DNA from: Chlorokybus atmophyticus
Lineage: Eukaryota; Plantae; Mesostigma and Chlorokybus algae
Direction of reading: 5' to 3'
Assembly (NCBI GenBank): GCA_009103225.1
Contig: RHPI01001965.1
Location: 511,114-575,113, forward strand
DNA: 64,000 nucleotides
A model generated the notes under the pieces. That model made no database searches and was not told where the DNA came from. It worked only from the letters and a program-made list of their open reading frames with translations. Position 1 is the stretch's first letter. Each line of letters opens with the position of its first letter. The position numbers and the translations under genes are program-made. This document shows positions 28,505 through 34,120 of the stretch, one piece after another.

Positions 28505-31338
28505 ATGGTGCTCTATAATTTCAAGAAGATTACAGTAGTACCTTCGGCGAAGGACTTGGTGGATATTGTGCTTTCTAAGACGCAAAGAACAACACCCACA
28601 GTCATACACAAGTCCTATGCCATCACACGAATCCGCGCCTTCTACATGCGCAAGGTCAGTATTATGCCAGCCCAAATTAAGCCAGAATGAACGCTGCGGG
28701 TGGTGTAGACGTTTCCACACGCCTTCGTTCTTGGCACAAGTTGCTGCTTCGAGATTGTTTTGGGAATTTCTTGCACTCTAAAGACATTACCCAGCAATTA
28801 AGCAACCAGCTTGACTGTTGTTATCACTGTGCCAAGCTAGCTGGGTTTTGTGGAAAACGGGGTTTAGGCATGAAGTTGCCGAGTAGTCCACAAGAGCGTT
28901 CCAGCGGGTTGTGTACGTGGACTTGCCGACGACGGTATTCAGTTTGAGCAAATTGCCTGCTGGACTCTGCATAGCGCCATGCACACCTGAAAATTCAGTC
29001 TCGCTCCTTTACAGAAAGTGCTGTGCTACCGTACACTGGTAGTCGTTGTTAGGTGCATAGTGCCTTTCACGCACCTGCTATGCGCTTGCAAGCATGTCAC
29101 TTAGCAGGCATGCTTGTGGCAGTGCATGCCAGGCGTCATGACATCCCGCTTAAACTTGTACAGGCAGTACATGGCTCAGGCAGTATTCTGTCTGTTCGAT
29201 GACAAGGTCCAGCATTCTGTTGTGTTCATACGGTTGCAGTAGTTGCCAAGCGGTTGCCATCTCAGGAAGCAGATACTAGCATTACAGCACTTTACGTACC
29301 ACAATGCTGGTGCTGATGTTCGCTGTGTTTCACCGTTGCAGGTGAAGTTTACGTCATCGACATATCATGACAGGATCACCACAATCCTTGAGGACTTCCC
29401 GCGTGTGGATGATATACATCCATTCTATGCCGACCTGCTGAATGTCCTGTATGATAAAGACCACTACAAATTGGCGCTGGGTCAGCTGCATGCGGCGCGC
29501 AACCTCATTGACAAGATGGCAAAGGATTACGTGCGCTTGCTTAAGTTTGGAGACTCGCTGTACCGCTGCAAGCAGCTCAAGCGCGCAGCTATGGGCCGCA
29601 TGTGCACACTGATGAAGAAGTTGACTGCGAGCCTGGCGTACCTTGAGCAGGTAGCTACGTATCGCTTGCTTGTCATGCATGTTGTAGCTTCAGTTGCTGG
29701 CCTGTTGAGTTGTGTCTCGTCTGCTACAAGCATTGTGTCCCTTGACCTCTTACGTTGCTGCAGGTTCGCCAACACATGTCCAGGTTGCCGTCCATCGACC
29801 CCAACACAAGGACCATCCTGATCTGCGGGTACCCGAACGTAGGCAAGAGCAGCTTCATGAACAAAGTGACTCGCGCGGATGTTGATGTACAGCCCTACGC
29901 GTTCACCACAAAGTCGCTATTTGTGGGACACACGGACTACAAATACCTGCGGTGGCAAGTTATTGACACTCCCGGCATACTCGACCATCCCCTGGAGCAA
30001 AGGAACACAATTGAGATGCAGAGCATAACCGCCCTGGCTCACTTGCGCGCAACTGTCCTCTACTTTGTGGACATTTCAGAGCGCTGCGGGTACACTCTGG
30101 CTCAACAGGCGGCACTCTTCCACAGCATCAAGCCTCTGTTTGCCAACAAGCCGCTCATGATTGTGTGCAACAAGGTGGACGCGCGGCCCCTGGAGAGCCT
30201 CACGGAAGATGAGCGCAACCTTCTTGAGGACATGCGCAAGGAGGCTGCGGGTGGTGAGGCCCTCATGGCTGATGGAGGCGAGCAGGATGATGCGCTTCTC
30301 ACCATGAGCACGCTCACCGAGGTCGGTATCAGTCAGGTGAAGGCCGCGGCCTGTGAGAAGCTGCTCGCTTTGCGTGTTGAGATGAAGATGAGAGGCAAGA
30401 AGGTGCACGATGTGCTCAATAGAATACATGTTGCAACGCCCGTGGCTCGCGATGCATCGGCCAGGCCCCCTGTCATTCCATCCGCTGTGTTGGCCGCACG
30501 CGAACAGGGCAAGGCGGTCGGACAATCGTCCATGCCCAGGACGCTCGAGAAGGATCTGGAAAATGATCAGGGCGGTGCGGGTGTTTATGTTGCCAACTGG
30601 CGCAAGAACTACATCCTCGAGGATGATAGCTGGAAGGAGGATATTATGCCGGAGGTCATCGACGGCCACAACATTGCCGACTTCATCGATGCGGACATCT
30701 TGCAGCGGCTGGAGGAGCTGGAGCGAGAAGAGGAGAGGCTTGAGGAGGAAGCCGAGTTTGAGGAGAACATGAGTGAGGGCGAGGAGCTCACTGCAGAGGA
30801 GGCGGCCACGTTGAGTGCCATTAGGAAAAAAAAGAAGAAGATGCTGCAGGAGCATCGCAGGAAGAAGGCGGTCGCCAGCAACAACTCCGTCGTGCCTCGT
30901 AAATACGATCACGCCCGCAACTCCACCACGGACAACATGCGGGCGCATCTGGCGGATCTCGGCATGGACCCCACCAAGGCGGTGGAGCGCGCGCGGAGCA
31001 GAAGCAAGTCGCAAGTGCGTGTTGGACGCAAGCGCGGCCGTGAAGAGGCTGGCATGGACATTGATGAAGCCGGGGCAGAGGGAGAAGGCCAGGTCATGAA
31101 CAGGGCTGCGCGGAGGAGGGCGCTGTCAAAGTCTCGCGGCAGGCAGATCATATCTGTGCCTGGAGATGGGTTCAAGGATATCGTGCAGAAAACCAAGGCC
31201 CAGAAGCTGGCAGACATGGCCCAGCGGGTGCGGAACAAGGATGCACGCAAGGGTGAAGGTGATCGGCACATTCCGGATCTTAAACCCAAGCATTTACTGG
31301 TTGGCAAGCGGAAGAAGGGCACGGCCAATCATAGATAG
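28505..31338 (+). CDS. NOG1: Nucleolar GTP-binding protein 1 (OBG family)
   Basis: Three exons (28505-28654, 29342-29650, 29764-31338) encode [86 protein letters not shown] and the C-terminus [23 protein letters not shown]. Confidence 0.97.
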
Positions 31339-31810: not shown

Positions 31811-33276
31811 TCACGTAGTTCCTCCTGAGTTCACAAGTGCTTCTGATACTGCAGCAGTGAGAAAGCTTAAACCGCGATGTTGGGGAGTTTTGGAGTCATC
31901 TGCGGCGGGTGGGTAGTTGAGGTCTGGCAGCAATGCACCACGTTGCTGATCCTCAGAAGGGTGGTCCTCCATGGCGCCTTCTTCTGCAATCTCACCCTCT
32001 TCTACCTCTTCATCTCGCAACACCCGAGAAGAAGCTTGTGCTTGCTCCGCAGGCAGCAGTCGTTGCGCAACTGGTCTGACTGGCTGTGCCTGAAGCCCTG
32101 CTACTGCTGGCTGTGCTAAGAATTGCGCAGGATGCATGTGCATGGACTGCTGCATCCTGATGAAGGCCTCATCATCCAAGGAGGTCGCTGGAGACATCGT
32201 CGGCGGGGTGGGTGCAAATGGTGTGCCCGTGTCGGAAGCAGGTGTGCCCGGTAAGCTCTCTTCTCTGCCAAGACGGCGCTTCTTGGCCTGCTCGGCCTTC
32301 TGCTTTTCCACGGCTTCAGCTGCTGCTTCAGCTGCCTTCCGCGCTTTCTGCAAGGAGATGGCTGCGTCCACGTCGAGCGGCTTCATTCGCGACGGCCGAT
32401 TCGTGCCCCCTCGCCCTGCGTATGACTCCGAGCGATGAGTCCGTGACAACAAGCTCGATCTGGAGTTGAAGCTTGGGGATTCAAAGCCTGAGGAGCCGCC
32501 CTGCTGCCGCTGCGCGAAGGTTGGGGACTTAAAAACAGGGCCGGAAGTCGTGCGGCCGAATAGAGGGGTTTTGCGCTCGTCTGCTGAAGCCGACGACGCG
32601 GCTTCTGAAGACCTCGCACGCTCCCTCAGCTGGAAATGCTCGCTGATATTACACGCGGGTGCCGGACCCACCAGGTTGTTGCTGAGAAAGGGGTCCTCTA
32701 GCGGATGGAATTGTAGCCCGCTACCCTCTTGCAATCGCTCCCTGAACTCCTCAATCGTGTCCCTGACCACTGAGAACTCCCTCATAACAGCGTCCATGTC
32801 CAGCACCTGCGCGAGCCAACATGTGCCATCATAGATGCACCTCTTGACTGGAACAAGCAATGTGCTTGGCTTACCCCGGAGAACTTGCCAATGGCAGCGC
32901 CTATGGTGCGCACCCAGTCATCATCGTCCGCTAGAGCAGCATCCGCCAGGCGCTGAAGTTCCTCCTTCGTCTCCAGCATAACACCCTAGCATGCAGGGCC
33001 TAGTTCAGCACGCTACACCGTACGTGTCACAATCAACCCTCGTAGCCGACACAGTATACTTCGATGAGGTACCTTACGTAGAGAGAGGGCAGCCAGCAGC
33101 AGGTTCCGCCTGACGGCAGGGTCGAGGCGAGAGAACCGCTCGAGCAGCGCGACCAACGCCTCGCGCGTAAGCACAGGTGCGAATGCTGCGCCACTCCATG
33201 GCTCTGCAAGTGCCGCAGACGCCCACTTCTCAACATCCACCAAGGATGTTGGCAGCGGAGGTACCCTTGACCCCAT
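31811..33276 (-). CDS. NELFA: Negative elongation factor A homolog (436 aa model)
   Basis: Exons 33276-33073, 32985-32875 and 32806-31811 join in phase 0. The N-terminus W..AAFAPVLT...ERFSRLDPAVRRNLLLAALSL...ETKEELQRLADAALADDDDWVRTI...LDMD...VRDTIEEFRERL parallels the recalled human NELF-A (WAPPSIASLLT...CFHGLSSAVKLKLLLGTLHL...ASLDSDPWVLMV). PLEDPFLSNN...EHFQLRERARS matches PLECQYLNKN...KHFQLKRKPKS, and MKPLDV matches VKLLDI. Confidence 0.82.
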
Positions 33277-34120
33277 GGCTGCTACCTATGACACTCGCAC
33301 GCTGCTAGTTGCATGCACCCTGCACAGCATTGCACGCGCTCTCAGCATTGTTGACATGCGCTCGACACATAAGCGCTCACTGCGTGCAGCGTAAGGGACC
33401 AGCTTCACACACACACACACACACACGGAAAAAATCAAAAGGAAAACATGCAAAAAACGCGTCCACAACAAGTTGCTGCTAACTTATGGGGCTCTCGGAA
33501 AATGGAGTAACCTTGACATGACATTTCTTAGGAGGTGAAATACCCACACATGCTAACAGGTGTTGCAGCCTATCGTGACGTTCAATGCAAACTGCGTAAA
33601 GAATATTTCAAGTTTGTGACAGCTGCACAGCCAGAACACACAACCGCAAGGCCACTGAGCCTCTGCTCTTTACGTTGATCTTGCGGCCCTCAAAGCTGCA
33701 GCTAAACACAAACAGACATTTGGCATAGCCAACCAAGAGCATGGAGATTGCCCTGCCGCGGCACGCACGACGGCAATGCTCGCCTTGTGCAATCAAGTCA
33801 AATAGAAATTGTAACACCGACCCGTTGATCTCCCAGGCCAAGCGTCTGCAACGAGCAAGCTACGTGCGTTGTGCAACTGTGGTAAAAGGGGAGCCAAGCA
33901 CAACATGCTTACCACTTCAGAGTCCGGAAGCCGTCCTCGCTTTGCTCCGCACAGTTAATTGAGAATGGCGACTGCAGGAACGGCCACTTGCTGGAATGAT
34001 ATTGCCTTGTGCCTCAATTGAGACAACACAAACCTCCCACCCAGTGCCTCCGCACTCCACAGCGCCTTTCTGCACAACGCCGCCTCCGTCGCCGCCCCCG
34101 TGTCCGGCTCACAGCTAAGA

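Follow-up and report, generated by a model that had tools for sequence, protein, structure and literature searches.

NELF is commonly presented as a pausing factor of metazoans. What is to be made, then, of a gene of the streptophyte alga Chlorokybus atmophyticus whose product resembles human NELF-A? The gene lies within a stretch of 64,000 nucleotides (assembly GCA_009103225.1, contig RHPI01001965.1, positions 511,114 to 575,113 of the forward strand), referred to here as the window, whose own numbering is used throughout. An earlier note, drawn up from the letters of the window, had modelled a spliced protein of 436 amino acids, had recognised in it three ordered blocks of human NELF-A and had proposed that an ancestral NELF pausing system was later lost in plants. 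The questions addressed here are whether this gene is real and expressed, whether its product is a NELF-A homologue, and what such a protein would do in an alga.

Gene structure and transcripts

The coding sequence is found on the minus strand and consists of three exons (33276..33073 + 32985..32875 + 32806..31811) that add up to 1,311 nt, are in frame and contain a single, terminal stop; the ATG is preceded upstream by an in-frame stop, and both coding introns (87 and 68 nt) begin with GT and end with AG. The 436-aa translation is identical to an annotated Chlorokybus protein, jgi/Chlat1/7683/Chrsp64S07139 (P0001 among the sequences collected here). Transcript contigs of public runs from two independent studies (X1, 2013, and X2, 2021), compared over 2,101 nt at the locus, omit precisely 68 and 87 nt where the exons join and display no differing letters, so that the spliced model of the earlier note, extending from 33276 to 31811, is borne out by both the RNA and the identical annotated protein.

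The transcripts add a further element at the 5' end. The contigs X2 and X3 leave the genome at 33320, and a 30-nt consensus of their loose letters maps uniquely to 33914-33943; the loose end of the X2 contig amounts to 111 nt. Because the contigs jump from 33320 to 33914 and GTAAGC stands 3' of the upstream exon on the gene strand, the gene can be credited with an additional exon in the 5' UTR, set apart by an intron of ~590 nt (Table 1), within which a (GT)n microsatellite is located (33398-33436). At the opposite end, the 3' UTR present in the transcript contigs reaches at least 31721.

Table 1. Features of the Chlorokybus NELF-A gene and of its product, in window coordinates
Feature	Position	Strand	Remarks
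5'-UTR exon	33914..34024	minus	absent from the earlier model; donor side at 33914, upstream end approximate
5'-UTR intron, gtaagc...tgtgcag	33321..33913	minus	~590 nt; boundaries ambiguous by 1-2 nt; from transcript contigs
Start-codon exon	33073..33320	minus	CDS 33276..33073, residues 1-68; W27 at 33198..33196
N-terminal helical domain of NELF-A	32723..33243	minus	residues 12-133, across both introns; Pfam PF23553, AlphaFold, Foldseek
Intron 1, GT..AG	32986..33072	minus	87 nt; skipped in X1 and X2 contigs
Coding exon 2	32875..32985	minus	residues 69-105; D-D-D-W92-V motif, W92 at 32916..32914
Intron 2, GT..AG	32807..32874	minus	68 nt; skipped in X1 and X2 contigs
Coding exon 3	31811..32806	minus	residues 106-436 and stop codon 31813..31811
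Extended region with P140-L-E-D-P-F-L and H162-F-Q-L	32612..32722	minus	residues 134-170; aligned to human 138-173
Conserved tentacle element, K247-P-L-D-V251 then charged helix 251-285	32267..32383	minus	from the family alignment
Acidic motif EEGEIAEEGAME	31967..32002	minus	residues 374-385; specific to the green lineage
Short C-terminal helix LSFLTAAVSEAL	31832..31864	minus	residues 420-430; common to Chlorokybus and Mesostigma

The genomic context of the gene is ordinary. The neighbouring gene, read on the plus strand, encodes the nucleolar GTPase NOG1 (Pfam domains NOG1, NOGCT and MMR_HSR1; large 3' exon at 29755-31338), the two genes being arranged tail to tail with their stop codons ~470 nt apart.

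The N-terminal domain and its fold

[quoted passage not shown] When PDB sequences were searched with phmmer, the significant matches were all human NELF-A (5l3x_A, E 2.6e-9; 8uha_U, 4.2e-8; 6gml_U, 8.1e-7) and, apart from these chains, nothing significant was found, the remaining matches having E>0.6. With human NELF-A a single significant HMMER alignment is obtained, between residues 22-173 of the query and 19-173 of the human protein, and both the first and the second of the three blocks recognised in the earlier note lie inside it.

The predicted fold leads to the same family. An AlphaFold model of residues 1-180, computed with 45 homologues as input, reached a pLDDT of 85.2 and a pTM of 0.72, with pLDDT values of about 90-98 over the N-terminal helical domain. 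The top five Foldseek matches of this model in the PDB are NELF-A chains (6GML, 9J0N, 8UHD, 5L3X and 8UHA; TM 0.66-0.71, probability 1.00) and no further significant fold was returned, the sixth match having an E of 0.26; a feature search of the ESM Atlas likewise returned clusters of NELF-A_N, among them one in which chlorophytes prevail. The best matches are NELF-A, and not an unrelated family, in the PDB sequences and among the folds alike. Pfam scores for the SMN YG-box (15-17 bits, Pro-rich tail), TilS and HEAT_2 were below the respective cut-offs, and these families were dismissed.

The identification of the product as a NELF-A homologue is supported by sequence, by profile, by predicted fold and by the conservation of the residues that contact NELF-C, described below. 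That the resemblance might have arisen by chance, or that an artefact might underlie the gene model, is a proposition whose probability is next to nil: nothing was found in its support, the weak and sub-threshold Pfam score of exon 1 taken alone (13 bits) being the only thing that could be cited, and it is opposed by the score of the full protein above the Pfam gathering threshold, by the concordance of PDB sequence, fold and phylogeny searches, and by the confirmation of splicing by RNA.

Conservation of the NELF-C interface

In the human complex, W24 and W89 of NELF-A are invariant tryptophans that insert into pockets of NELF-C, and the a7-a8 segment of NELF-A (138-154) is buried in the partner (PMC4940160). 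In the HMMER alignment to the human protein W24, W89 and P138 correspond to W27, W92 and P140 of Chlorokybus, and human helices a6-a9, wrapped around NELF-C, find their equivalent in residues 134-170 of the algal protein. This segment (133-170) has a lower confidence in the full-length AlphaFold model, as expected for a portion of the molecule that wraps a partner.

These positions are highly conserved in the family alignments. Among 45 homologues W27 is invariant and W92, V93 and P140 are conserved at 90% or more; across 28 full-length sequences no change is seen at P140 or F163, H162 hardly varies, and W27 again belongs to the invariant or almost invariant columns. Judged from these alignments, the strongest constraint in the protein falls on the part that in human binds NELF-C.

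Human NELF-A (WHSC2; PDB 5L3X chain A and 6GML chain U) possesses the same colinear N-domain and extended region, the identity between the two proteins being 28% in the structural alignment, and resembles the Chlorokybus protein in W24, in W89, in the P138-L-E..Y-L segment, in the H-F-Q-L motif and in a disordered tentacle containing K-x-L-D-[IV] (human 255-259). The differences concern the length (436 aa in Chlorokybus vs 528 in human), the Pfam score, which is only 40 bits in Chlorokybus, the long charged helix that follows the K-x-L-D-[IV] motif in the algal protein, and the C-terminal portion (see below).

The tentacle and its K-x-L-D-[IV] motif

The Pol II-binding, HDAg-like region of human NELF-A comprises residues 89-248; significant alignment with the Chlorokybus protein reaches 89-173, and beyond that point short motifs only are found. 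Many of the alignments with the relatives detected by phmmer (see below) extend to query residue 280-340. When 40 long homologues were aligned with E-INS-i, two further colinear motifs emerged, [DS]-[LM]-F near residue 212 and [KR]-x-[LIM]-[LI]-D-[IVL] at 247-251, the latter followed by a charged stretch. Human numbering is provided by P0109, a vertebrate NELF-A (E 3.9e-212 to 6gml_U), through which the motif near residue 212 corresponds to human P-F-R-S-P 222-226 and K247-V251 to human K255-L-L-D-I259.

When profiles of the green and of the animal mid-regions, aligned separately, were compared by hhalign, K-x-L-D-[IV] was the best local match; it spans 21 columns, is weak (P 0.001, probability 21%) and agrees with the family alignment, its weight being modest. 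A different pairing, in which HMMER set the stretch containing K-P-L-D-V against the human segment around KTLDAEV, scored -0.0 bits, is not significant and was rejected, as both the alignment of the family and the anchoring by the vertebrate sequence favour KLLDI 255-259. The third block of the earlier note, K.LD[IV], has to be described differently from the other two: as a pairwise match with the human protein it is not significant, while as a motif that recurs across the family and coincides with human K255-I259 it stands. The alignments suggest that the K-x-L-D-[IV] motif is a family-wide, pan-eukaryotic element.

In human NELF-A, K255-D258 are among the tentacle residues that were crosslinked to RNA (Gorbovytska et al. 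2022, PMC9068813). As to the structural setting of the motif in Chlorokybus, the full-length AlphaFold model, in which the N-domain is predicted with confidence, has disorder at 171-245, then a helix that is again confident over 251-285 (pLDDT 83-91), and a mostly disordered tail containing short helices at 318-324 and 420-430.

Relatives and phylogenetic distribution

With a limit of E<=1e-3, an exhaustive phmmer search yielded 178 relatives, headed by a protein of Mesostigma viride (E 2.5e-29). Further named matches belong to chlorophytes (Tetraselmis, Cymbomonas, Coccomyxa, Stichococcus, Myrmecia, Dunaliella, Chlamydomonas eustigma, Trebouxia and Raphidocelis) and, beyond the green algae, to one glaucophyte and to animals. 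Klebsormidium, Chara, the Zygnematophyceae and land plants do not occur among the named matches, which constitutes partial evidence, many matches being nameless. Mollusc NELF-A predominates among the matches listed in the last profile search, a result with no bearing on the absence from plants, and word-indexed protein searches with exon 3 or with residues 1-180 returned as sole match the Chlorokybus protein itself and are uninformative on relatives.

The green sequences come out as one clade (100/100) in the maximum-likelihood tree built from the N-domain, and within this clade Chlorokybus groups with Mesostigma and one metagenomic fragment (97/84). Because the green clade is fully supported and Chlorokybus stands beside Mesostigma in it, the gene was vertically inherited. 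The metagenomic fragment, P0007, is a sequence of 167 aa encoded by an ENA metagenome contig of 753 nt and may derive from another early-diverging green alga.

The family has been described before. Homologues of NELF-A and NELF-C in Chlorella and a NELF-A in Dictyostelium were reported by Vos et al. 2016 (PMC4940160), who inferred an ancient origin followed by loss. In the comparative study of Chivu et al. (bioRxiv 2023/24, 10.1101/2023.02.19.529146) NELF-B and NELF-C/D were found to be widespread and lost in land plants, apparent NELF-A homologues were detected in some unicellular eukaryotes, NELF-E was metazoan-only, and pausing indices were higher in species with core NELF. The exact 436-aa sequence is present in a supplementary file of that study (FinalNELFAlike_renamed.fasta), is listed for its Fig. 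S6 alignment, and in its tree is the sister of Mesostigma P003548 (82.8/99). NELF-A-domain genes have also been noted in Chlamydomonas (2026 PeerJ paper). In the literature searched, 'NELF' together with 'Chlorokybus' was not found in a main text. Both the protein and the evolutionary conclusion are already published, and the present result is a confirmation, not a discovery; the proposal of an ancestral NELF lost in plants, made in the earlier note, agrees with Vos et al. and with Chivu et al. and is not new. What is added here is modest: the gene structure is verified by RNA and includes an intron in the 5' UTR, the retention of the NELF-C interface is documented residue by residue, a tentacle motif is shared with human K255-I259, and the green copies, which have an acidic motif of their own, uniformly lack the C-terminal domain.

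The published data sets also bear on the fate of NELF in later streptophytes. Klebsormidium, Chara, Coleochaete, Spirogloea and Netrium are absent from all NELF-A, NELF-B and NELF-C/D files of Chivu et al., and so are Physcomitrella, Marchantia and Arabidopsis; all eight are named in the Spt4 files of the same study, and most of them in its Spt5, Paf1 and cyclin T files. This distribution can be cited in favour of the Chlorokybus gene being a decaying, non-functional relic on its way to the loss seen in the later-diverging streptophytes. Such a relic is very improbable, as the open reading frame is intact and has canonical splice sites, two studies have runs with transcripts of the gene, the residues central to the interface have been kept, and the terminal branch of Chlorokybus in the N-domain tree is shorter than that of Mesostigma (0.35 vs 1.10).

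The C-terminal portion and the green-lineage architecture

The C-terminal domain is a trait of animal and of some other eukaryotic NELF-A and does not define the Pfam family. In the human protein it occupies approximately residues 440-528, and no second significant stretch of similarity to human NELF-A was detected in the Chlorokybus protein by phmmer. The absence of this domain, suspected in the earlier note, is confirmed and extends to every green-lineage copy compared, the pattern ILGFMAG...FEMNYxTGxW being missing from the C-terminal 140 residues of all of them. The domain, with its ILGFMAG...FEMNYxTGxW...KK signature, is carried by the animal sequences and, in addition, by P0015, P0039 (assembly GCA_000277445.1), P0072, P0088 and P0107, which are placed outside the animal NELF-A group of the N-domain tree or were not included in the tree. 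These five proteins have the N-domain (Pfam score of 48-68 bits in P0039 and P0015), H-F-K-L, and [LI]-D-[ILV] at the equivalent place, and carry the animal-type C-terminal domain, which the green-lineage proteins lack.

The green proteins display features of their own in this portion of the molecule. Of the 200 collected sequences, 10 contain the pattern E[ESDQ]GE[IVL], and all 10 are of the green lineage; the longer acidic motif E-[ES]-G-E-[IVL]-x-E-E is found, besides Chlorokybus, in P0002, P0004, P0005, P0006 and P0009; the terminal helix GLS.[LV]T.A.SEAL is common to Chlorokybus and Mesostigma. Both the acidic EEGEI motif and the short C-terminal helix of Chlorokybus are absent from the animal proteins. 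Mesostigma viride Mv06154 (P0002) and the chlorophyte proteins (Cymbomonas KAK3288821, Coccomyxa, Tetraselmis, Dunaliella and Chlamydomonas eustigma) have the same architecture as the Chlorokybus protein, namely the N-domain, K-Q/P-L-D-V, E-E-G-E-[IVL] and no animal-type C-terminal domain; their identity to Chlorokybus is 34-40%, and lengths and low-complexity linkers vary. The comparison points to a reduced green-lineage architecture, in which the defining NELF-C-binding N-terminal module would have been kept and the C-terminal domain lost clade-wide.

Could a protein of this architecture be a NELF-A-like molecule that has the N-terminal domain alone in common with NELF-A and acts outside promoter-proximal pausing? 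The absence of the C-terminal domain, with a green-specific acidic motif present in its stead, speaks in this direction, as does the fact that Chivu et al. filed the protein under 'NELFA-like' and that it is missing from their strict NELF-A candidate file; it has no line in their NELF-A-like InterProScan file, and the HDAg-like domain was predicted by InterProScan solely in animals and in Capsaspora. Furthermore, the final NELF-B list of the same study contains no Chlorokybus entry. Yet it is at the residues contacting NELF-C that conservation across the family is highest, animals have the K-x-L-D-[IV] tentacle motif as well, and a NELF-C/D candidate co-occurs in the Chlorokybus genome, the long Chlat1 8042 / Chrsp73S07517 of the final candidate list of Chivu et al. 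As for the C-terminal domain, it is present also in matches outside the animal group of the tree and, should these be non-animal, the full architecture would be old and the green form would result from secondary loss. On balance a role outside pausing is considered unlikely.

Proposed function and implications

The preferred reading is that the protein is a genuine NELF-A, most likely serving as subunit A in a simple form of NELF by which Pol II is restrained early in elongation. This assignment is based on the conserved interface residues, on the co-occurrence of a candidate gene for the partner, and on comparative pausing data. The N-terminal part would heterodimerise with the algal NELF-C/D to give a NELF-AC lobe docked on RNA polymerase II, to which the tentacle motif may contribute contacts with Pol II or with RNA; with NELF-B added, and NELF-E missing because it is metazoan-only, the result would be a simpler NELF with a slowing effect on early elongation. 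Taking gene and proposed function together, it is quite probable that this locus, intact and transcribed, represents the only NELF-A orthologue of Chlorokybus.

A bolder proposal, possible but somewhat doubtful, is that Chlorokybus and Mesostigma are the only streptophytes with a working NELF devoid of NELF-E (A, C/D and perhaps B), and that NELF-A is an ancestral full subunit instead of the late addition on the animal stem that present models assume. The latter part is suggested because the K-x-L-D-[IV] motif and, elsewhere, the C-terminal domain span the distance from algae to animals. If this were true, the loss of NELF-dependent pausing would be dated to the branch between the Chlorokybus/Mesostigma clade and the Klebsormidiophyceae with the later streptophytes. 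With NELF-A present in the deepest branch of the streptophytes and absent from later ones, the time of its loss in the plant lineage is bracketed, a point that already follows from published data, and the alga would offer a plant-side model for NELF-dependent pausing.
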